A DNA stretch of 64,000 nt from Guillardia theta CCMP2712 (Eukaryota > Protista > Cryptophyta), in the NCBI RefSeq assembly GCF_000315625.1, contig NW_005434645.1:419925-483924 (forward strand), in the 5' to 3' direction. Below the pieces are notes generated by a model. That model was not told where the DNA came from and did not search any database. It saw only the letters and a list, made by a program, of their open reading frames with translations. The translations under genes were made by a program, and so were the position numbers. Below, piece after piece: positions 1-29,861 of this stretch (position 1 is the first letter of the stretch; every line of letters begins with the position of its first letter).

Positions 1-1679
1 TTTTTTGATCCAGCATGCCATCCTTTGCTTCCATTTTTCCCTACCCATCTGTTGGAATGGAGATAGTATGAATCGTATTTTACCTTCCAAGAGGAGATTT
101 CTTGCTTCAGAAGCAAGTTTTCCTCCCTAACATTGGACAGCTCCCTACGCAGATCCTCGAAATGTGACTTGATTGATTCGGAACCTCTCTTTCCCATTTC
201 CATTTTTGTTTCAAGGCTATTCAATTTGTCCTTCGCAAAGAAAAACATTAATTGGCCAAGAAAAATATTATTCATGTGCCATGGAAAAACTACTTGGATG
301 GTGATACATACCTTGGACGAGTCATGCTCCTGTCTAATCGCTTCAAGCCAGTTCCTCATCTGATGCTTCTCGTCTTGTATTACTCGAATCATCTCGATCA
401 AACTCGCAACTGTCGCATCGACATTGACTTGGAGAGAAGAAAACTCTTGAAGAGTTTGTGCTGTCACACGAGGATCAGGCCGAACTAAGTTGGAATGGCA
501 CTAGTTTTCTGCAAACCTCGATCTTCCAGCGAAGAAAGCTCCAGATTTTGGACATTATGTAAGATTATCTCCAGACAGGGCAATAGGTGCTGGTAATCAT
601 CTTGGCGTAAGACATCTTTGATTTCTTTGACCATATTGAAGATCTCTTCAATCTTGTCCACGCGATTCTGAGATGTCCTCACCAGCGTTGCTTTTCTACA
701 TGATACAATCATTCGAGCGAGAATGTGAATAACAAAAAACTACTTGACAATGCCGTTTCGCTTCAGAGAGATGATGCTTTTGGATCCGATGGCACCATTC
801 CCCATCATGTTTTGAAGAATGTTATTCTCGTCTACCTGCAAATATTTTCAAACTAGAGGTAGAAAGAGTTCCAATCTATACTGGACGATTATCAACTGCT
901 GTGATTTCATCTCCAAATAGGATCTCTCCTTTCTCAAAGGCCCATGATCCTGGCAGCACACACTTGACCTGTGTTGGCTTACAGTCTTGGGTCTCTAGTC
1001 CAATGCGAACTCCAAAGGTCGAAGCATCATCCTTCTGGGGAGATTTGTATAACGTGCTGATCCCCTCGAAGACCACCTGATTCAGTCTTTCTAGCTCTTC
1101 AATCATCACTGTTTCTTTCTGAACCATACAGAAAGTGTCCATCTTTGCTTGAATCGAGCCCGCGTCGAAGGACTGAAGCATCGGAGATTTCGGCGAGCTC
1201 CATGACATCGATTCATAAGGTGACCGAGGGGTACCGCTCATGCTGAGTACTGTTACACCCGAATCTAGCAAGCAAACGAGTCAGTGTCCTGTAATCATTG
1301 GGGAATTGACATCTACGCGGGAATATCCTGAATCATCACTCAACCAGACAATTAAATCGTCCATTGTACTTTTTCTCTCTTCCGATGGCATGACGGTGCA
1401 TTCCCATTCTTACATGCCTCTTGATCACACCAGCAGTTTACACTGCATTCTTAAATCTCAACCGTCCATGGTCACACCGATCACCCTCATTATGTCGCAC
1501 CACATCCAGGTTCCCTTGCATCTCTTCCCTCTGCCTCTCCTCTTTGGTCTCATGCGAATACCCAGCTGCTCGTTCCTCTTGTCTATCAACTGTATTCTGA
1601 TCCCTCTTCTGCCACGTTTATTCCTCTCCTCCTGAGAGTCCTCAGCGGCTGCTGATCTAATCATAGAGCTCGCTGGCAT
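1..1679 (-). CDS. PDZ-domain/coiled-coil protein, multi-exon, runs off the left edge
   Basis: ORF 876-1271 encodes a PDZ-like segment (FGVRIGLE...VKCVLPGSWAFEKGEILFGDEITAVDNRP), followed by helical exons at 485-712. The ATG at 1679 is tentative. Confidence 0.55.
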
Positions 1680-2368
1680 GTTCCATTTCGTCGGCACTAC
1701 TATCGGAGGTACCGTGGATTATCCCTGTACCCTCCTCAATATTATGAAATGTAGGGGTACTCTCCGGTCCATTGGGGGTCTTTTCCGACTACTAGCTACA
1801 GAGAAGCTACAAAGGGGTCGAGGTAGGTCCATGGTCCCCCCGGGGCCGGCCGCCGCCGGGGCCCCCGGCGGCCGGGCCCGGCTGGCGGAGTCAGTCCGAC
1901 CACGTGACTACTAACAGACAGATCGGGGGGCACTGCAGCGGCCGCGCCCGGGACTGCCAGGGGACTCAGGCCGCTCGAGTCGGCCGCCTACTAGCGGTTT
2001 GATTGAACAGTGGTCACTGTCATGCCGGACGCCGCCGGCCGGGCGTCCGACTCCGGCGATCCGACATCGCCGACCCGGACCCGGGCCACTGGCAAACATC
2101 TCATGATCCAATGCCTTAGCGCCGCCACTGGCACGGTCCAATCATTATCGGAGTCTTTCTAGTGATGTCAAGGAAGAACTGGAGGTTCAAATATCAGGCC
2201 GCTGCGGTGGCCCGGGGGCACTTGAAGTCACTGTGGCATATTCAGTTCAACTGACTTGGCAAGTTGAATGAACTGAGTCACAAAGTTTGCATATGAGACG
2301 GGCGGCGCCCCGCCGGACTCCCTGCCGGGCCCGGACTAGGAGGGGTTTAGGTTTAGGAATCCACTTAA

Positions 2369-2519
2369 TAGATAAACGCCACGAATCTATCTACCACGGG
2401 TACTCTCCTCATGATGTGACGGAATATGTGAATACCCTTCTGAACGACGAACTAAGTTTTCGCACAGAACTGCCGTCGTATGATTGAGAGCCGCGACTCT
2501 CCGTCATACAACGGCAGTT
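2369..2519 (-). ncRNA. Candidate Fanzor omegaRNA scaffold (four abutting hairpins)
   Basis: Stems at 2468-2483/2504-2519 (inner 2486-2501), 2438-2442/2465-2469, 2398-2404/2431-2437 and 2369-2376/2386-2393. Four plus-strand C-A mismatches become G-U pairs on the minus strand. Lies ~215 nt downstream of the Fanzor stop. Exact ends are unknown. Confidence 0.7.
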
Positions 2520-2733
2520 GTTTTTTTTTGCCAAATTGTCTTCGGATGTTGTTGGAGCCTTACATGAATCCTACCAAATGATGCCAGTCAGTCACTTCAA
2601 TGATCACATGTCGTAAACATCGGATCATAATGGAGGCAGGCACCGGGCAGGCAGGCAGGCAGGGAATTAGGCATCGAGTCCCGAGGGACGCAGTCTGGGT
2701 AGGGAGGGGGCGACAACAATCATTGAATTCACC

Positions 2734-4795
2734 TCAGGGGCGACGTAGGTGATTCGGTCTTTCAGGAAACACATTGAAACAAGTGAGTATATTCAGTGCA
2801 GCATTCAAGTCCCTGGATTTGATCGGCTTTCCTTTACAGCTGTCACGATAACAGTTAGATGAAAAGGTGAATTACAGGAGTATACAAAACTTGACATTAC
2901 CTCGATGATCTGCAAAATTTCAATCCTCGTACTTCACTTTTCCTTGTTTTCAACCTACAGGTCTCGTCTGGTTCTTTCCCTGTATTTTCAATCCGTCGAA
3001 GCACATCGAGCTCAGAACCACAATCGTTACAGCACTTGGTAGTACGGTATTCGTCAACATCTACGACTCTGTAGTGATTCTCGAATCTTCTTCTTATCCA
3101 CCTGACCGGTACAGGCCTTTCTCCTCGACGTCCTATAGACGGGAACCTTGCATTTCCGTATGCGATAACAGGTTCTATTTCTCCCTTTCCTTTCATTGTA
3201 CGGATAAACCTGTCGACTGACTTTCGTTTCGAAATGTAGATGTCGAATTTCATCCTGGCGTATTTTCGCTTTGAATAATGCGAAGTTAACTCCTCCCAAT
3301 GACTTGTAACTGCAAGAAGATAGTCTTCGAATCTTGATAGACTGCCGCCAGACTTACTCGAGAACCCCTTGAGATAGTGCAATGTCGATTGAATATCTTG
3401 ATCCCACGTCTTTCTTTTCTTTTTATTGCGATTCAGATGTGACTCGTGATAATATTGTTTTCTCGAAAACTGAAATCTTTTTCTGATTATTTGTTGATCA
3501 TCTCTGAATTGTTCGACGGCCGATATAATGACGCTCCTCCCAGGGTCGATCGCAATTACCCTTGGGCAATTTTTACATTCTTCGATCTCTCTTTGGTATT
3601 CTGAATTTTCATGTAATACTTTGTATGATATTGATATCTTCTTCGCCGATTTCCGTTCAGCCCTTTTTCTATCGGCAAGCCATTTGGTAGTGCGCAATGA
3701 AGGTTCCTGTTCGAGTCCATCGATTGTTTTGACAATCAGCGTGAATCGAAAACAAACCGATACACCGTCTGTCGTGATACTTGTAATCTCCTCTCTCTGA
3801 TCTCTGAACAGATTCGAACAGTCGAAAATCCTTCTGAAATTCCTAGAGTTCTCCAAAGTTTGATCTATTCTCATGAACGATTTTTTATCTTCTCCCGGTT
3901 TCAAACTGTTCGCTTCTTTCAAAATGTAATACATCACATCATTATCGATTGTTAGATGTTTTCTGCCGAATTTCGACATTGGTGCTGCCTTGAATGTTTT
4001 TTTCGAGAGACCACGATCTTCGAAGAACTTCAACATGAACATGTGTGTCTCGATTATCTCAAACAGATTTTTCTGCAACCTATGATCAAATTTGTCATAT
4101 TTGAAACTAAAAAGATCTTCGTCCCCCGATAATCCAATTAGTTGTTTCATATGGTCGATGAAGGTTCCTATCTGCTGTGAATTATTCCTGTTAAACACTT
4201 CTGTCTTCAACTCGTAATCTTTCCTTTGAAACAATACATTCTTCACGTCTTCGATTTCTTGCTGATGGTTAATATGTAACTCTCCTTTGCAGAATTCGGC
4301 AATGAACTTTTCCAATCGGTTTGTAAAATTTGCTTTCAGGTCTTGGTAGAAATTCGTTCCATATTGATTTGCAGCGAATACAATAGCTTGCGAGTCTCCT
4401 CGAATTCTACATAAATCAACGAAAAGATGTCTTTTCTCTGACCAGAAACGTTGTAGAGTTGGATACTTGTTATCTGTACGGCTATGTTGTTCCATTCCAA
4501 GTGTAAAAACATTCCAGAAAAATGTCGATTTGGCTCTCTTGATTTCATCTACTACATATCGTAAATTCCCTGTATCCCTGCCCCATATCAGAAAACAGTT
4601 GAATATCATACTGCCTCTTGATGTGACGTGACTGATATGTAATACCCATCTGTCGATCACGTCTAAAATCGATCTGTTCTCTACCTTGAGTCTCGAGTAT
4701 AACCCACATTTGACGACTCTCGTGAATGGTTTTGAATAACTTATTTCTTGACCGTTGTCTGAATCATCTGTAATTCGTTTTCTCTTCCTCGGCAT
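2734..4795 (-). CDS. Fanzor1-like (TnpB-family) RNA-guided DNA endonuclease, 2 exons (4795-2901, 2839-2734), 666 aa
   Basis: ITTDGVSVC motif, RuvC-I VIAIDPG, IAYGNARF, RuvC-II VDEYRTTKCCNDC. After removing the GT-AG intron 2900-2840: CRSSSC and RuvC-III SRDLNAALNI...RPNHLRRP*. N-terminal NLS-like PRKRKR. Confidence 0.92.
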
Positions 4796-5597
4796 GTTAT
4801 AGTATGTTAGTCTGGCGAAACCATGTTAGATAGCAGGTAGTCGCTACATTTTTTTCATTACCATCGTTTCAGTGTATTGTCGGACCGCAAACTCTGTAAT
4901 GGCGGGAAGACGAAACGAGAGCCACAAACTTTCCGTCGGAGGCGGGAAGAATTTTTTTTTTCTTTTTTAAGACCCTCATACAGCCCCATTGGATGGGTGA
5001 TTGAAACCTATCAACGACCCCTGTCATGCTGGTCCAGGACTCCTTCGGGAGTCCTTTTGTCGATTAAAGGATAAGTTTCTCCGGCCCGGGACAAGTTCCC
5101 GCCACTTTTCCAGGGTACGGGTGGGACTTTTTCATAGGGAAGGGGGGGTGAGGCTATTCAATTGTGAGGGTGGGCAATCTCCAATGACGAAGGGGTGGGG
5201 TACTTTGCAGTCAGATTGTAGGGTGCTCTTCCGGGCCTTCCAAAAGGCGGGAAAAAGTTTGCCGCGCTCCAATGTCCTGCCGCTTACCTATGCCGTTCCT
5301 TGACCAAACTTCCTTCCCATGGAAGAGTATCTTCAACTTATCTCTGATTATATCTGCGACTTTGTTCTGCTCCTTCGATCTCTTGTGGTTGTTTCTCCCT
5401 CGTAATGTCCTTAAGCTTCCTCTTGGTGCAAATTCTTGCAAATTTCCGAACTTTCTTCGTTGTGTTTCATCAACCTGATTCTGTATTGACAGATAGATTA
5501 ATTGCGCCGGAATCAAACTTGAATTATTCGTCAACCAATTTCAGTTTCTCGTGCTTGAAAAGTCCAACAAAGTTGGTCACATTGTGAAATATTTGCA

Positions 5598-8500
5598 ATG
5601 AGCAAATCTGCATCAAGATCTGTTCATTCCAAAGAAGCAGCGCTTCAACCTGATTTTCTGGATCGCCAGCTGGGAAACAGTGAACTAATAAAGAGATTAA
5701 AGGTTCTTGTGATTCACAAAGTGTTAGAAATAGAGTGTTTAATGTTTCTTCAAGGTTGCCACTGAAGTATTGGAAGCGTACGGAGATGAAGATGAAATCG
5801 TTGAGCAGGCTAAAAGAGGTTGTATCTCGTTTGTCTCCTTGTTGCCATCTGATGAAATCTGCAGAAATTGGGCAGCTCTCATCTTCCCTTGGCGAGGATT
5901 GGCTTGTAGAACATAAGAATAAGGACGTGCGGCTGTTGGTTGCTTGTGCATTGGCTGATGTGCTTCGAATCTACGCACCTGACCCTCCATATGAGGAGCA
6001 AATTTGTGCCGACATCATGAAGCTTTTTATCAAAATTTTGAGAGATTTTGAGAACCCAGACATGAATACACAGCATCCCTCGTACAGGTAATCAATGTTT
6101 TGATCGAAGAACTCCCCTTGGTTGACTCAATTGCATTCTAGTATCCATTTCTACCTTTTGGAACGACTGAGCACGATCTCAATATTCAGTATAATTCCCG
6201 AGCTCATTGGATTCCGTGATGAGTTGATGTTAGAGCTCACAAAAGCAGCATACACTTTAGTTGGAAACATGCCCAACCATAGTTCAGCATCCAAAGTGAC
6301 AGAGCACCTTACAAGTATCCTATGCAGTGTCATTGAAGAAACCGAGTATCATGAAATTCAGCTGCTGGATCTTGTTGTGGGAGCGCTCTGTCAACATGAG
6401 AAAAAAGAAAATCCCAATGGTTATAGTATGATGAAGACGGTCATCGCCTCCTGTGAAAACCACTTTCAATACTTTTTGGAGCGACAGCTTCACCAGGTAA
6501 TTGTATACATATTCTGACTATGGAGAGATGATTGTTTCCCCTCTAGATCAAAGCAGGATTTCAAACTGAAAGTGAACTGGCTAATGGTGAACGGCTGGCA
6601 GAGGCTGTTTACGAATTGAGCACTGTTGCTCCTCGCGTTCTGACTCAGGTACAGCATTTCAGTGTTATATTCTCTGACTCAAACTCGAAGGTTCTGCCTG
6701 CATACACTGAAGACCTGACCATGGAAGATCCAAGTCTTAGAATCAAGGCGGTAAAATTGCTTGGAGCTATTTTTTCAGTCGGGACCTTCCAATTGGATTT
6801 TTCACAAGTGTTCACCGAATTCAAGAGGAGAACCTTTGACAAAGACCCCGACGTGCGCAAGTCGATGGCTTCAGTCATTCACCACCTCGTTTCTAAGAGA
6901 CCAGAACTTTCCAAGGCATTCATGGAGGAAAGTTGGGTTGCCAATGGCGACGAAAGAGATGCACCCATGCGCCTCCTAGTCATCGATTCCGACGAAGGAG
7001 TTCGCTGTGAGTCTGTGAGTGCCGTCTTCGACCTTTCTCTGAGTAATCCAGAAACTATCCCTACGGAGTTTCTGAAGTATGTTTCTGAACGAGTGATGGA
7101 TAAGAAAGCAAGTGTGAGGAAGAAAGCATTGGAGGGCCTAGCCAATTTGTGGCAAAAATATTGTGCTCCATACAAATATTTTGATTTAACGAATGCTTCA
7201 GAGCAGCGCTATGCTTGGATTCCTTCTAAGATTCTTTCGATTTCAACTTTAGACCAGGAGTCACGAGTTCATGCTTTGCACTGTCTTGAAAATATTTGCT
7301 TGAATGAGGAAAACATTGGACGGCCTTCTCATGACCTGGCATTGGACTTCTTCTGCTTGTTGGACCATAAGGGAAAGGATCAAATGTTCAATCTTTTGCG
7401 ATCGAAGCATCTTTTCTTGGAGAATTTTTTGAAGTTCAGTCAATTGCAAACAAAATCCTCGATGGAGATTGACGAAGATGAAAACGACAAGACCGAGGAA
7501 AGCTTGATTTCCAAGATTTCCTCCAGTTTTGCCGATCCTTCTGCAGCCAGTGAAGCCATCATGAAATTACGAGACATCAAAACTGGTAAAATTTGGGAGA
7601 ACTTGGAGGTAATGGCCAAACAATCAAAAACTGCTGAGGAGTTCAAAAAGTTGCATGACGATGTGATGAAAAAACTGGGACCCAGAAATCCAGTTTCAGG
7701 TTTTATGAAGACTTTGTTGTCAAAGTTAATTGACAATCACTTTGGAATTACCTTTATCCAGAATGTCCTCAAGTGTTTGCAGCATGATGACTCCGACATG
7801 GTATTAAGAGCGAAGAAGGGCCTTCCCGTACTTGCAGTACAGGCCAAAATTTTTGCCACCATGTTTAGCAACGAAGAGGCTATTCTGGAATCTCTTTTGA
7901 TGAAATCACCAACTGAGGATCCAGAAATCCTGGAATACCTACTGAAGATCACAAGTGAGACTGGCAAAGATCTACATCGTCTTCGAAAAAACAAGTCCTT
8001 TCTTTCCAAGCTTGAAAATTACTGTTCACATGATTCATGGATGGTGGCCAAATATGCGATTCGGAGTCTCCTGTCATTGAAAGAAAGCTTTTCTGCAGAT
8101 GGGAAGAAGTTCGTTGACAACTGTGTCAAGGCTTTGAATTTTGGACCTGGGCTTCCGTCCACTCTCAGAGTCCTTGTCGAAGTCCTGAAGGTGCATCCAG
8201 AGCTTTCTCCTAGCATCGAGACGACTATTGAGAAGTTCGTTGTCAAGAAGCTTCTCCATGCACCTTCAAATCATTCTTCAAGCAAAAAGGATCGTAATAT
8301 CCACATGCAGGCCAGGGTCCAGGGGATCAAGCTGATTTCTATTTACCTTTCCCATGGCGACTTGGAGACAGAAGTGGCTGAGACACTACTTGATCATATA
8401 CAAAATATCATTCAAGAACAAGGAGAAGTGTCTACAGATCGAAGCACTGCAAAGCCAGACAGGGCCACCTTGAGGCTTGTTGCTGGATCTTGCTTAATCA

Positions 8501-10860
8501 AGATAGCTAAATCTATGCTGGATTTGTTTCCTCCACAAGCCTTTCTAACGTTGTCCCGGCTTTTGAATGATGAAGACTCAAAAGTGAAATCGACCATCTT
8601 GAAAAAATTGTACAAAGGTACTGCCAAACAGCAGGGGAAATTACCATTTTATTACGCGAGTATGTTTGCTATGGTGGCAAATGATACAGATTCAAATGTG
8701 GTTGATCAAGGCAAATCCTATTTACGCAACGTTGTCTTATTGATGAATCGTCTTAAGACTCATACTGGTAAGGCAAATCTGTCTATACTTCCAGAGCGAA
8801 TTTTGCCATGGCTGATTTTCATGCTTGTTCTCCACGAAGAATACACAAACCCTGAAGTTGAGAGCACCACTGCCAGCATGTGCTTCAAAAAATGCCTTGA
8901 ATTTTATCTTTCGGCTATTTCTCAACTGCCTGCAGACGATCAGAATACTTCAGCCATACTCCAAATTTTTGAGTATGTCCGAAAATGTTCTATTCCAATG
9001 GACTTGGCAGGAGATGTCCCTGGATCAATCCTCACTCGCAATGTCGGTTTGATCACCGAGGTTGGCCAGAGACTACTCATCAAGATAGGACTTAATCGAA
9101 AGCATGGCACCAAGGGATTCGCTGGATCTTTGCAAAGATTAGTAGATAGCAAAATCTTTCGCGAGGGTGATCAAGCTGTGCCGAATGATTCCTATGGAGT
9201 TGATTATACTCTGCAATCGCGCAAAGCAAATCCAAAGAAAAGGATATCTTCTTCAAAGGATGACACGGTCAAGGAATCGGATGATGAAACATCTGAACCA
9301 TTCGATATGTCTTCACCGCAAACAAAGAGAAACAGGAAGAGCGCTGGATCTACCAAGAATCTTTCTGTAGATGATGAAGCTCCAGATCCAGAGGACGACG
9401 TGCCTGAACAGGTAGCTCGTGCTTTAAGCTATGTTGTATGACATGCCATCAGGTGAAATATGCATCTTCTAGTCGCCAAATTGCCGTCGGCGCCGTGGTG
9501 GAAGCTGAGATGAAAAATCCCCATACTGGAAAGCTTGAATGGCTGAAAGGAAAGATCATCAAAGTGAACGCCAAGAAGAAGACTTTCGACTTGCACTTTG
9601 AGGTCACAAGCTCAGATGAGCAGGGGGATTGGACGGAGACATACAAGGTGGGTTGCTGATTATGCTCTGCTCTTTGCTCTACTCCCACGATCGATCAAGG
9701 GATCTGACTTGCGCGGCAGTTTGGCGAAGAGGGCAAGGAGTGGAGGTGGCCATTGGAAACACCATCTCAACCGCGAGGAGGCCTGCAGACAAGGGATCGA
9801 TTAACTCCGGCCCAGTCTCCAGACAAGAGAGTCAAAGCTTCGGAAGATAACATTGAAGAAACAGCGAAGAAGATTGCTGTTGGTGCTATGGTGGAAGCTG
9901 AGATGGAAAATCCCCATACTGGAAAGCTTGAATGGCTGAAAGGAAAGATCATCAAAGTGAACGCCAAGAAGAAGACTTTCGACTTGCACTTTGAGGTCAC
10001 AAGCTCAGATGAGCAGGGGGATTGGACGGAGACATACAAGGTGGGTTGCTGATTATGCTCTGCTCTTTGCTCTACTCCCACGATCGATCAAGGGATCTGA
10101 CTTGCGCGGCAGTTTGGAGAAGAGGGCAAGGAGTGGCGATGGCCTGCCAAACATTTGCATGCGCCGCCTTCGCCAGAGAAAAGCTCGCCCTCTGTACCCA
10201 TGAAGAAAGCCCCTTCAAGATTGTCAGGAGCTACACCGCCAGTCAAGTCACCAGCGTCGAGTGTCAAATCTCCAGCTTCAAGTGTCAAGTCACCAGCGTC
10301 GAGTGTCAAATCTCCTGCTTCTAGCTTTAAGTCACCTGCTTCGGGTGTCAAGGCTGAACTCAAGACAACCAAGTCGTCCTCTTTGGTGAGTTCTTCTCGA
10401 TCCCTCTCGCTTGTTTCTCTTGTCGGCAAGCTTGGTCACATTTTATCTGTAGTCTTCAGCTCATAGCTCGAAACAGAGCGACAAAAAAGCACGATCGGAC
10501 TCCAAACCGTCAACTCCAAGAATATCTGTAATACCTGTGTTGCAATGTGGAAGTATCTCCCCTTGACCAGTGTCTTTCCAGGCGCCGTTTGATATTGACG
10601 ACGACGAGGATGATGGAGATGCACTCCCCTTCTCGAAGAAGGAGACTCCTGTCAAATTGTCGCCCAATCCTGCGTCGAGTCGGTCCAAGGCCATGACTCC
10701 CGTGAAAGGAAGAGCTAGTGCTTCACATGATCTGTCCGGTACGGCTTGGGACAAGGCCATCAATCGTCTCAAGAATACGAAGGCGATGGATGACAGAGAT
10801 TCTGGATCCAAACGTCTGAATGCTGATGGTGCTGTTAAGGCCAAAAGGCGGAGAATTTAA
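5598..10860 (+). CDS. PDS5: Sister chromatid cohesion protein PDS5, multi-exon, with two C-terminal Tudor/Agenet-like domains
   Basis: ELIKRLK in exon 1, HKNKDVRLLVACALADVLRIYAPDPPY, ERVMDKKASVRKKAL, WIPSKIL, LPERILPWLIFML. HEAT-repeat-like ORF 6616-9441. Basic C-terminus ending KRRRI*. Confidence 0.9.
9497..10136 (+). repeat. ~247-bp direct duplication (9497-9743 / 9890-10136) of a Tudor-like exon plus its 72-nt intron
   Basis: Near-identical copies offset by 393 nt. Introns 9648-9719 and 10041-10112 look identical by eye. Confidence 0.93.
10242..10352 (+). repeat. 21-bp coding tandem repeat encoding (VKSPASS)x5
   Basis: Translation VKSPASSVKSPASSVKSPASSVKSPASSFKSPASGVK in ORF 10155-10466. 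Confidence 0.85.
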
Positions 10861-26132: not shown

Positions 26133-29100
26133 AACACCACCCTACGTTTTATAACCAGCTTTTGCAATCGTGATAATATCCTCTGTGTACCCCAAACTCA
26201 AAGATGCTGATTAACGTCTACCCGCCATGGATGAAACCTGACTTGCCCTCCTCTGACCTGTTTCCTGTCCTCTTGTCGTTCTCTTCCTCTATCCCTCTCT
26301 CCATCTGCCATCGCTCCTTCCCTCTTCCTCCCCCGCTCCCTCCGCTGCTCGCGTCCACCTTCCGAAGCTTGAGGCGCCTCTTTGCCCCACCACTACCACC
26401 CCTACCTCCTCCACATGGGCATCTCTACCCTATCCTGCAAACCACCCTACCCCTGATTATGCCTGTAAATCACCCCATTGGTTGAGTCCACCCTGGTATT
26501 CCTGCATGACCCTCAAGGGGGTCCAGTCGAATGGAAATTTGAAAGACAGGGTGGTCATGTACATTTTGTTGGAAGTAGGCAGCATTGGGGGTAGGGGTGC
26601 AAATTGTGCGCGTTTTTCCACCCCTCCGCTACACTACATAGCCAATACCAGGGGTAGGGTAGTGGGCGGCTTCCGAAGCTCCATGGGTGGGTCCAAGGAA
26701 TGTGCGGCCATTCGTGATCAACTTCGGCAACTTCTTCGGTTGAGGCGAGCTCGCCCGGGCTCCGTGGCAGGCGCTCCGACCGTACTACGGCCGGCCCGGC
26801 GGTCCGTCACGGTCACCGTGTCACGGTGACGGATCGGACCGCCGCGCCGCCACGGCACTGAGCCTCGGAGACTAACGGCAGAGCTTCGGAGTCACTCCCG
26901 GCCCGCCGGCCGGTCCTCACTGCCGAGTTCCGAACTTGAACTGAGTCACCGAGTCTCTTCATCCAGTGACCGCCGGGGACCGTACGAGTCTCGGAGTGGC
27001 TTTCGAGTCCTCCTCAGGGCCTCCTCTGGGCCCGGCCGCTAAGAAGTTCCCCGTCGACCTTCCGAGTTCTTACTAAGTTCGCAAAAGAAGCCGCTGGGAT
27101 GATCCAACAGGCCCGGAAAGGAGCAACTTGTGCCGCAGTGTGCCACCGGCGGGTCAGCAACTTCACAAGGGCTCAGCACCTCAAAGTTTCATCAGAATAA
27201 ACCCGGCTTGCAACAACTTGGCATCGATGATCAATCCGACATCAAGTGATGGCGACGGCCGGCTTTCAAGTTTGCCAGCGGCTCCCCAATCCCAATATGG
27301 AGCGTCGCATGCGTGTCAACTTGCCGTTCAAGTTGCCACTCCGCTGCGACCCCCTCGGACACGCGGGGTCAAGTTGACCCATGGCAAATTTTCAGAACGG
27401 AGGGTCTGTGAAGGGCCGCTACCCCAGAACTTCGCAAATATTTGAAGTTGTTTCCAGTCCATCGGAGGACTTCAACTCTCCGAACTTCACGAACACAACC
27501 CCCACCCTGTTCAAGTTGGGACGACGGCTGAGAGCCCTGGAAAGAAGGGCTCAGCGGCTGACATCTGCAGCGGCTGAGCGCTGGTACGAATGATTGGCTG
27601 TGACAACTCTACCGATTGGTTTGTTCTCTCCTTATTACATTTGCATGTCACGACTGTAGATACGACGTTGATTGTGTTGCATCTCGAAACGATATCACTA
27701 CACTGTTAATTGTGTTCCATCTGGCTCAAAGTGGCGTAGACGTTTTGCAACCCGTTAGCCTTCGGGGTGTGAGATACTGCAGATTAAATGAAGCATGTTT
27801 ACTACGAACTAGAATCATTCTGATTTACTCACTCGTTTGAACTTGAAGGGCTTACAAAACTCGGGCTTCAAGAGAGGATGAGATTTCCGTCGGGGAGAGT
27901 CGTTGCACAAACAGTCATCGATGTATTTGGGAGAGGTACATTCCTCCTTCTCAGGGCAAGTTTCAAAATCATCATTCGTGATCAAGAAATTGACGACTTC
28001 ATAAATAGCACTCCAGACAAGCTGCAACAGCACGACTATGAAAGGAGATTTCGTGAAGGCATGTTTGGGATAGTTCGTTGGTCGTAGACTGTCAGCAGGC
28101 TGATGTTTGCTAGCGTTTTCAGGGTGTCTGCTCTCTGACCACTTGCAATGCTGGTGCGTGATATATCTCGGAAGGTCTTGATGGGAAGCCTCGTGGGACG
28201 TCCGCGCTGAAGTGTATGGCCCATGTTGTACATCCAATTGACTGGCTCGGGTGCCTGCTGGCATCGAATTCCACCGGCGCGTGAAGCAGGTAAGAAATGA
28301 GTGCTGGCAATGGCAAATATGACAAGATCTGTATAGAAGAGAAGAGGTGAGGCCCAGGGTTTGAATCCGAAGCAGAGGCTTGCTGGAGAACGAGAGCTCG
28401 AGAACACTGGGAATGATTAGAATGAAATGCCGAGCAAGCCACGAGCTGGCGCACTGAGTAGGGGAGGTAATCTTGAAAGAACAAACAACTAGCAAAGAAA
28501 ACGAAGATGCAGCAGATAGGAGGGATAGAGCTGGATGGCGGCAACGACCGTAAGGGGAGAGAGGGAGGCCTTCGGGTTGTCGTGTACAGCTCCAACTCCT
28601 TGCAACTTGGCGCTGCAGTAAAGATGTTTGCCTGTCAGCACATGTTTGTTTTTATGATTTGAATGATTCCAAAATGATGAAAGTTGACAGAGTGAGTCCC
28701 GATCACCCCTCCTTTGCACCCTCTCAATCAGAAACGGTACCCCAGGGGTAGGTGGTCAGACTGAAGCCCCAGAGAGTCAAGTGGCTCGTGACCGTGACTC
28801 TTCGAGGCTATAACTGACGCGCATGCGGACGCATCGTAGCAGCGCCACGTGATCGGTCCGGAATGAGCCGATGATCCGCCGCCTCGGATGAAAAACGGTC
28901 CGAGCGGCGGCTCAACTCAGTGACTTTCACTTTCACTGCGGATCTTCAATCTTACTGAATCAGTGCCACATGTCGGATATATCTTGAAAGTTTTTACTCA
29001 ACTTGCTTGCAAACACTGTGCCATGCCATCATCGGCCGCCCCGGCGGCGCCCCGGCGGCCCGCCGGTTCACGGTTGGCCCAGTCAGGCCCAAGGCCGTCA

Positions 29101-29861
29101 CCTCAGGCGGCCGGCCGCCGCGGCCCGCCGCGCCGCCGCTGTGACGCGCGGCCCCGTCCGACGGATCGGACGGTGCTCGTCATCCGGGCTCGGACTCCGC
29201 GCTGCGCCGGGCGGGCGGCGGTCACCGCCGCGCCCGGCGGGCGGAAACCACACGGACTGCCGTAAGTAGACAGTGATAGCACCGACTGCAAGTTTCTGTA
29301 GCAGTGGTAATAGATATCACGAATGGCCGCGCAGGAAAGATATCAGGATGCAGAGAACAAACGGAGGTGACTCGATAAGAGATTGGTATGGATGGTCAAG
29401 CTTGTTTACTTCAAGCGGCTGAGCAATCCAGTCTCACAGAGACTATACACCTCGTTCTCCTTTCCCTGTCCTGCCAATCATTGCGTGCGGCCCTTCTTCC
29501 GGGAGTCTTCCTCGGTCCCTAAAATAGGGACTGCTTGGTCCTAGGAACTACGACTACCGGTACTCTACGCTTCTTCAAGATCTGCGATATGATTCTTCGA
29601 CCGGTCCGAGGCCTGGTTCCGTACCTTGAGGGTCCCCTGACTCAGTGAGAAAGAGTCATAGGCTTGACATGACGAGGTCTTCGATTCTCATCCAATGCTC
29701 TCTGTGAAGTTGATGTAGCTGCTCCCTTGACCTTGACAGGTCCTGTGTCTCCGTAGGAGCATGCTTGGAGGTGGTCTCGTGCATTCCTTGTATGTCCTCC
29801 GCTAAGATGATCATGATAGTACTGTCTTCTTTGATCAGACCCCTTGTTCTCCCATGTCCAT

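Follow-up and report, generated by a model that had tools for sequence, protein, structure and literature searches.

Fanzor nucleases are compact eukaryotic genome editors, and for each of them the guide-RNA scaffold that a functional Fanzor requires has to be defined before the enzyme can be used or understood. The omegaRNAs of the Fanzors described so far derive from the 3' non-coding region that abuts the right end of the element and reach 14-21 nt beyond it (PMC10432273; PMC10530073). Fz1 scaffolds consist of two to four stem-loops with the guide directly after the last one (PMC11423790), and the fRNA of CrFNuc is located in the 3' UTR of a Fanzor mRNA that contains introns (PMC10530073). 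The locus described here, located in a 64-kb stretch of DNA that was analysed as a whole (the window), resembles SpuFz1, GtFz1 and PpFz1 (PMC10432273; PMC11423790) in that consecutive stem-loops (four, as in GtFz1) follow the stop codon of a Fanzor1 gene, are encoded on its strand and lie close to the right end of an element that is non-autonomous, with the guide expected right after the last stem-loop. The SpuFz1 scaffold is 75 nt long, has two stems, is no more than 80 nt away from the stop codon and spans a 30-nt inverted repeat, whereas the module at this locus measures 154 nt (minus strand, 2519 to 2366) and lies 215 nt from the stop codon (53 nt when spliced), with no inverted repeats found; moreover, the protein similarity to SpuFz1 is remote (E 1.6e-6). 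KnFNuc (Klebsormidium nitens Fanzor1) and CrFNuc (Chlamydomonas Fanzor1c) also have a highly structured RNA, encoded in 3' non-coding sequence that adjoins the right end (Jiang et al. 2023, PMC10530073). The TAM of KnFNuc is TTA, and all three left flanks found here end in CTTA; KnFNuc is reported to be intron-less, whereas the present gene needs the removal of a 61-nt intron, and CrFNuc resides in Helitron2 elements with short target site duplications (TSDs) and asymmetric terminal inverted repeats (TIRs), neither of which is demonstrable here. The TnpB omegaRNA (reRNA) of IS200/IS605 and IS607 elements likewise stems from the 3'-terminal part of the nuclease transcript and from the right end of the element, with the flank serving as guide and the TAM beside the left end; in TnpB RNAs, and in a giant-virus relative of the present element (see below), the RNA overlaps the 3' end of the ORF, whereas the module described here is separated from it by an intron-bearing UTR.

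We lean towards reading this four-hairpin module as all or most of the omegaRNA scaffold of the Fanzor1 element, because it is strongly structured, follows an intact Fanzor1-type gene in the same orientation and is located inside a multi-copy element, near its end and in a spliced terminal exon. The general arrangement is known from SpuFz1, GtFz1, KnFNuc and CrFNuc, and the candidate 154-nt scaffold of this uncharacterised element would be a further example of it. The locus offers a scaffold candidate, two possible guide starts and a Fanzor1 that is apparently intact and belongs to a little-studied branch with its nearest relatives in giant viruses.

The Fanzor1 gene, its element and its relatives

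The 632-codon ORF ends short of the RuvC-III motif. Removal of the 61-nt intron (Table 1) brings ...SCKGKPIKSRDLNAALNIL...ERPNHLRRP* into frame and gives a protein of 666 aa, in which exon 2 adds SRDLNAALNIL and the second cysteine pair of the zinc finger. Fanzor1 proteins were recognised by the RuvC-I aspartate, the relocated glutamate of DE[YF], the aspartate of RDxNAAxNI (RuvC-III) and the CxxC...CxxxxC zinc finger (TNB), all of which were present after splicing. Residues D417, E582, C589 and C592 were invariant and the R-D-x-N-A-x-x-N-I columns near-invariant in the family alignment (A2), and the spliced C-terminus resembled those of the homologues P0004, P0006 and P0008 (...SRDVNAAMNIL...ERPEFLRRPL). 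In a PDB search, SpuFz1 (8gkh) was the sole significant match (E 1.6e-6, residues 375-604); the Pfam TNB domain stayed under its cut-off in this protein (14.8 bits vs 26.3). Compared with two metagenome copies of the element, the coding sequence showed 4 synonymous and 4 non-synonymous changes (contig L001) and 5 synonymous and 4 non-synonymous changes (contig L002), and non-synonymous changes between copies are fewer than random change would give. The preliminary description of this DNA had placed the hairpins downstream of a Fanzor gene, which agrees with the present analysis: the Fanzor1 gene on the same strand is apparently intact and, judged from its sequence, looks functional as a nuclease.

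Table 1. Features of the Fanzor1 element in the window (position 1 is the first letter of the window)
Feature	Position	Strand	Description	Basis
5' non-coding part of element	4796..5077	-	left boundary 5072-5077; GGACTCC-CGAA-GGAGTCC hairpin; two GGCGGGAA motifs	
Fanzor1-type nuclease, coding exon 1	2901..4795	-	632 codons; ORF 4795-2897; basic NLS-like N-terminal run; RuvC-I D417; DEY glutamate E582; first zinc-finger CxxC	
Spliceosomal coding intron, 61 nt	2840..2900	-	GTAATG...ACAG; splits the zinc-finger halves	joint 2839/2901 in run X8 RNA contig
Coding exon 2	2734..2839	-	ends ...SCKGKPIKSRDLNAALNILTCFNVFPERPNHLRRP; stop 2736-2734; brings RuvC-III aspartate	spliced translation
3'-UTR intron, 162 nt	2571..2732	-	GTGAAT...GGTAG; begins one base past stop codon	joint 2569/2732 (cut +1), X8 and X13 contigs
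A9 run	2521..2529	-	abuts 5' side of hairpin 1; on plus strand G then T9 after the hairpin	sequence
Hairpin 1 (H1)	2468..2519	-	stems of 16 and 6 bp separated by a 2x2 internal loop; 4-nt loop; two G-U pairs	fold
Hairpin 2 (H2)	2438..2467	-	short, weak, with bulges	fold
Hairpin 3 (H3)	2398..2436	-	basal stem 7-8 bp; apical part variable	fold and copies
Hairpin 4 (H4)	2366..2396	-	12-bp stem, four G-U pairs, 7-nt loop; final element of module	fold
GC-rich tail (70% GC)	2299..2365	-	first flank (guide and target) or last part of element	window copy and L001/L002; absent from X8 contig

Among the 1321 homologues found in the representative protein library, the closest shared 35% identity with the protein, and the nearest relatives were mostly located in giant-virus-like contigs and GVMAG bins. 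The exact protein of the window and its best homologue (P0004) yielded no record on look-up, the protein of this locus was absent from the supplements of Bao and Jurka 2013, and a protein-fragment search with the C-terminal 201 aa gave no match. When viral contigs were scanned with the protein, the family alignment and a two-arm hairpin pattern, no close copy was detected and relatives were found at 22-28% identity only. The closest relatives with known context (L126 and L127, 35% identity) are embedded in AT-rich, densely packed gene arrays of giant-virus-like character that include PARP, dsRBD, YqaJ and DUF5764 genes; together, the AT-rich element and the giant-virus-like context of its relatives hint at an exchange between virus and host lineages. 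Three stretches with one giant-virus bin name (GVMAG-M-3300020163-17; L131 2292-4407, L134 1-1306 and L137 2292-3720) are 92-95% identical copies of a related Fanzor element, whose left end lies about 209 nt before the protein match and whose right end lies 35 nt past the stop codon, a layout different from the one described here. This set of copies is a clean system to define the guide RNA of that relative.

The Fanzor1 gene and the hairpin module are contained in a multi-copy, mobile element of roughly 2.7 kb. In the metagenome contigs L001 and L002, similarity to the window was confined to the stretch between 5076-5081 and 2299, and the sequences upstream of the junction ...CTTA/TCCTTTAATCGAC were unrelated in the window copy (W), L001 and L002; these three different left flanks identify the element as mobile and multi-copy. 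TTA precedes the left end in 3/3 copies (the flanks end in CTTA), and CTTA may be either the start of the element or a shared target motif. The GC content of the element was 0.41, compared with 0.52 in the window, and a transposase gene was absent from it. Neither terminal inverted repeats nor direct repeats or TSDs between the two ends were found above the level of shuffles; a 12-of-21 inverted match between the ends that had been spotted by eye was dropped, as it failed against shuffles. The search for further copies that the preliminary description had proposed was thus successful in metagenomes (L001 and L002), but a second copy, ORF-less or other, was not found within the 64-kb window, either by self-comparison of 1701-5400 or with a covariance model built from the module (R1). 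A metagenome scan with a 16-nt degenerate pattern of hairpin 1 returned 120 single-arm matches, none of which aligned to the element, the pattern being too short.

Four of the five matches to the E2F-site-like motif GGCGGGAA in the window (4901-4908, 4941-4948, 5096-5103 and 5246-5253) are clustered between the Fanzor start and a divergent PDS5-like gene (6616-9441), two inside the element and two outside; five matches per 64-kb window occurred in just 3/100 shuffles. Islands rich in GC, with palindromic runs of the CCGGCC/GGGCCC type, flank the element (1806-2095 and 2299-2345; 2989-3100 in L001), and six more GC-rich islands are present in the window (e.g. 29013-29268).

Predicted fold and conservation of the hairpin module

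Folding of both strands against shuffles, as had been suggested from the sequence, gave clear results. The minimum free energy of the minus strand between 2360 and 2530 was -65.4 kcal/mol, compared with -40.5 +/- 3.7 kcal/mol for dinucleotide shuffles (z -6.8; 0/200 as good), and that of the plus strand -50.5 kcal/mol (z -4.75). The module itself (minus strand, 2366-2519; -65 kcal/mol, z about -6.7) forms four adjoining stem-loops separated by gaps of 0-1 nt, and folded within the spliced UTR it showed pair probabilities of 0.84-0.96; its boundary was placed at 2366 instead of 2369 as described previously. Most of the fold signal of the module comes from hairpin 1 (-35.2 kcal/mol, z -8.6, 0/500 shuffles), a near-perfect duplex of 22 bp (16+6). 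Its outer stem, in which 2468-2483 faces 2504-2519, comprises 15 Watson-Crick pairs and one C-A on the plus strand that is a G-U pair on the minus strand, and in the inner stem of this palindrome GAGAG (2486-2490) stands opposite CTCTC (2497-2501), confirming the capped 16-bp stem reported earlier. The A9 run noted before the first stem was also found, as T9 on the plus strand. The further claim of three more gapless stems held with respect to number and spacing, but hairpin 2 was no better than chance (-5.9 kcal/mol, z -1.3, 50/500 shuffles equal or better). Hairpin 3 (-10.0 kcal/mol, z -2.2, 15/500 shuffles) and hairpin 4 (-8.0 kcal/mol, z -3.1, 4/500 shuffles) were modestly above chance; the stem of hairpin 4, with its four G-U pairs, is restricted to the minus strand (plus strand, -2.2 kcal/mol). 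A first stem-loop of seven bp, a rule that carries little weight since it rests on three solved Fz1 complexes (PMC11423790), was not found: hairpin 1 has 16+6 bp, and the hairpin with a basal stem of 7-8 bp, hairpin 3, is not the first. In a search of positions 1-8000, no Rfam family reached its gathering score, the top matches being two miRNA models with 22-23 bits compared with 100.

Four C-A mismatches that become G-U pairs on the Fanzor strand had been put forward as a mark of selection on RNA. These cases are real and more exist: with fixed helix registers, eight positions pair on the minus strand only (G-U), but two counter-examples pair on the plus strand only, and the one-sided binomial probability for eight versus two is about 0.055. 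The energy gap between the minus and the plus strand was -14.3 kcal/mol, compared with -7.7 +/- 3.9 kcal/mol for dinucleotide shuffles, 23/500 of which reached this gap; the shuffles already favour the minus strand because it is G+U-rich. The strand energy difference is therefore only weakly above the expectation from composition, and the strand-specific wobbles are suggestive only as an argument for selection on RNA. What stands of the earlier claim of selection on an RNA structure is that the module folds far better than shuffles, with the lower energy on the Fanzor strand. Hairpin 2 is at chance, and neither the excess of G-U pairs nor the energy gap between the strands is more than borderline (p about 0.05 each).

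Within the module, hairpins 1, 2 and 4 were invariant in W, L001, L002 and the RNA contig of run X8. All differences were confined to the apical part of hairpin 3, where L001, L002 and X8 have one G more than W and L001 additionally has 6 inserted nt, and the basal stem of hairpin 3 and the four-hairpin fold are kept despite these indels. Because the copies are 99-100% identical, they give no covariation signal. Conservation of the structure beside homologous Fanzors, a check that the preliminary description had called for, was not observed: covariance model R1, run against the window and 14 homologous Fanzor loci, found only the locus itself, and no common architecture emerged when the 3' flanks of distant homologues were folded. 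Given that these relatives are at most 35% identical, the lack of a similar structure beside them is not strong counter-evidence at such a distance.

The module might also have no function, hairpin 1 being a young inverted duplication with three transitions and the other stems a product of chance in a G+U-rich stretch. The chance-level score of hairpin 2, the modest scores of hairpins 3 and 4, the advantage of 7.7 kcal/mol that shuffles of the same composition give to the minus strand and the missing covariation among near-identical copies would all fit such an origin. We nevertheless consider it unlikely in view of the overall z of -6.8, the spacerless hairpins that stop exactly where homology to the X8 contig stops (see below) and a location that agrees with known Fanzor guide RNAs (PMC10432273; PMC10530073).

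The right end of the element and the putative guide

Between 2572 and 2365 the X8 contig showed 0 substitutions relative to W and one extra base (after 2406), whereas the 194 nt beyond 2365 (minus strand ACACCTAAAGTCTC...) were unrelated to W. This divergence (2365/2364) falls one base past the last pair of hairpin 4, and the GC content rises at 2366/2365 from 0.41-0.47 to 0.70. In contrast, the GC-rich tail from 2365 to 2299 is common to W and L001/L002, with one substitution and a 3-nt deletion, and homology stops 66 bases further on, at 2299, past which L001 and L002 share a very GC-rich flank with each other but not with W. The predicted pairing of the tail is lost in L001/L002. A telomere-like CCTAAACCTAAACC in the tail was discarded as a single occurrence, since 15/100 shuffles also give one. 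A right end at 2365 is at odds with the homology of W and L001/L002 down to 2299, unless the flanking DNA belongs to a repeat. Either the X8 copy would have been rearranged exactly at the foot of hairpin 4, if 2299 is the right end, or W and L001/L002 would each sit in a copy of a GC-rich repeat. The break in X8, the step in GC content and the solved Fz1 complexes, in which the guide comes straight after the last stem-loop, make a right end at 2366/2365, directly after hairpin 4, somewhat more probable than one at 2299; the distance of the module to the right end would be 0 nt in the former case and 66 nt in the latter. The earlier proposal that the hairpins delimit the scaffold is consequently backed by the X8 copy, which loses homology one base after hairpin 4, but not by L001/L002, which are homologous down to 2299.

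Hairpins are found at the ends of other mobile elements, such as the subterminal hairpins of IS200/IS605 and the 3' hairpins of Fanzor1-bearing Helitron/Helitron2 elements in green algae. The module, which is subterminal at 0-70 nt from the right boundary, could likewise be a cis-acting end structure that is folded as single-stranded DNA for a transposase and not a guide scaffold. As in hairpin-ended elements, terminal inverted repeats were not found; a perfect 7-bp hairpin is present near the left end, and its 8-mer GGACTCCC is found again in inverted orientation, about 20 nt from 2299 and immediately ahead of a GC hairpin, a Helitron2-like arrangement (PMC3627910). Furthermore, folded DNA also tolerates G-T wobbles, so that strand bias alone is no proof of RNA. 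In Helitron2, however, the 5' terminal hairpin with the asymmetric TIR lies 0-2 bp from the end, the 3' asymmetric TIR lies 20-30 bp from the 3' end before the terminal hairpin, and short TSDs are present (PMC3627910), whereas the 5' hairpin of this element lies about 24 nt inside the end, no TSDs were seen, and the inverted 8-mer, which fits a right end at 2299 only, was not significant (118/1000 shuffles scored equally). Since Helitron-type termini (TC...CTRR) and a transposase gene are absent from the element, and four consecutive hairpins of 154 nt exceed the needs of known end signals, a role as end structure instead of scaffold appears improbable. The two roles are also compatible, in that the right-end hairpin region of IS200/605 elements belongs to the omegaRNA.

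Regarding the omegaRNA reading that we prefer, the module lies on the same strand as the Fanzor1 gene, downstream of it and inside the element, and it abuts the right end if this is 2365. The putative scaffold is invariant except for the apical part of hairpin 3, and the sequence after 2365 is common to W and L001/L002 but different in X8. If the locus works like SpuFz1, GtFz1, KnFNuc and CrFNuc, the guide RNA would be excised from the untranslated 3' part of the Fanzor transcript, would remain bound to the nuclease via its stem-loops and would extend some 15-20 nt beyond the right end of the element, this extension being the guide. The complex would cut DNA with a matching sequence beside a short TAM, which may be the TTA before the left end, and with a right end at 2366/2365 the guide in the W copy would read AGUGGAUUCCUAAACC... 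Position, strand, fold, the spliced exon and the break in X8 thus speak for the omegaRNA scaffold proposed in the preliminary description, while the choice between 2365 and 2299, a possible antisense contribution to the RNA coverage (see below) and the lack of a similar structure beside distant homologues weigh against it. In a bolder and unlikely version, the right end would be at 2365 and the GC-rich tail shared by W and L001/L002, copies that are otherwise placed differently, would be the target, the element homing into a dispersed family of GC-rich repeats as a 'safe harbour' with the same guide at several loci; the guide RNA would mature within the terminal exon of a Pol II transcript that is spliced and subject to antisense control. 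If true, safe-harbour homing and a Pol II-derived guide would amount to a way of life for an OMEGA system that is specific to eukaryotes.

Introns and transcription of the locus

Three small runs were treated as transcriptomes on account of the spliced forms present in them; their contigs are of the poly(A) RNA-seq type and strandless. The joint at 2839/2901 reads CT..AC on the plus strand and GT..AG on the minus strand. The joint of the 162-nt 3'-UTR intron had just 27 nt on its shorter side in the X8 and X13 contigs, and this intron is spliced in part of the transcripts and retained in one X15 contig. Minus-strand GT..AG splicing links the exon with the stop codon to the terminal exon with the hairpin module, reducing the distance between stop codon and module from 215 to 53 nt. 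Starting from the acceptor (exon start 2570), contigs pass through hairpin 1 and extend to 2452 (X13) and 2365 (X8), and the X15 contig, which reaches 2407, is also past hairpin 1. Spliced minus-strand transcripts therefore enter the exon that bears the module, and the omegaRNA as a discrete RNA is a candidate. Sampled words of 2299-2530 were present in seven probable RNA runs from several studies at shares of 0.17-0.52 (six of them at 0.43-0.52); a share of about 0.52 is predicted both by a module without the tail and by a module with an L001-type tail.

Hairpins can serve as signals for transcript 3' ends, as in the mimivirus-type 'hairpin rule', and hairpin 1 could be a 3'-end signal of this kind, derived from a giant virus, or could act together with T9 as a plus-strand terminator, with hairpins 2-4 being incidental. 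The giant-virus-like contigs and GVMAG bins in which the nearest relatives (up to 35% identity) occur, long perfect hairpins after the Fanzor ORF in several of these giant-virus-like relatives, the low GC content of the element within the window (0.41 within 0.52), the G plus T9 that follows hairpin 1 on the plus strand and the concentration of most of the fold signal in hairpin 1 alone are in line with such a signal. However, the transcript contigs cross hairpin 1 instead of ending there (X8 to 2365, X15 to 2407), a scan for the bacterial consensus terminator made no call at hairpin 1, hairpins 3 and 4 are each above chance, with hairpin 4 forming on the minus strand only, and the spliceosomal introns imply that the gene has long been resident in a eukaryote. 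A transcript-end signal is thus quite improbable.

The locus is also transcribed from the opposite strand. Four plus-strand GT..AG introns (2783-2839, 3172-3239, 3306-3543 and about 3595-3659) revealed that spliced RNA without a long ORF, antisense to the Fanzor coding exon, crosses the locus. As the contigs are strandless and a spliced plus-strand transcript crosses the locus, the RNA coverage of the hairpins may be partly antisense. Run X22, which consists of stranded raw reads and was sampled to about 6%, gave reads on the gene in one direction only, antisense to Fanzor by splice orientation, and this sample contained zero reads on 2300-2996. Transcription and splicing on both strands, the antisense direction of all stranded raw reads over the gene and the near-perfect 22-bp duplex of hairpin 1 could be taken to indicate that the long hairpin and the sense/antisense transcription give rise to double-stranded RNA, from which host siRNAs would silence the element, or that hairpin 1 is a miRNA-like precursor. 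We judge this to be very unlikely, as matches to Rfam miRNA precursors were far under threshold (22.9 bits vs a gathering score of 100, E 0.43), and hairpins 2-4 and the position of the module at the end of the element would be left unexplained.

The eukaryotic layers found at this locus, namely a coding intron, a 3'-UTR intron and a spliced antisense RNA, raise the question of how the guide RNA is freed from the Pol II transcript. The 162-nt intron, for its part, carries a pyrimidine-rich (CCTG)n stretch that is lost on splicing.
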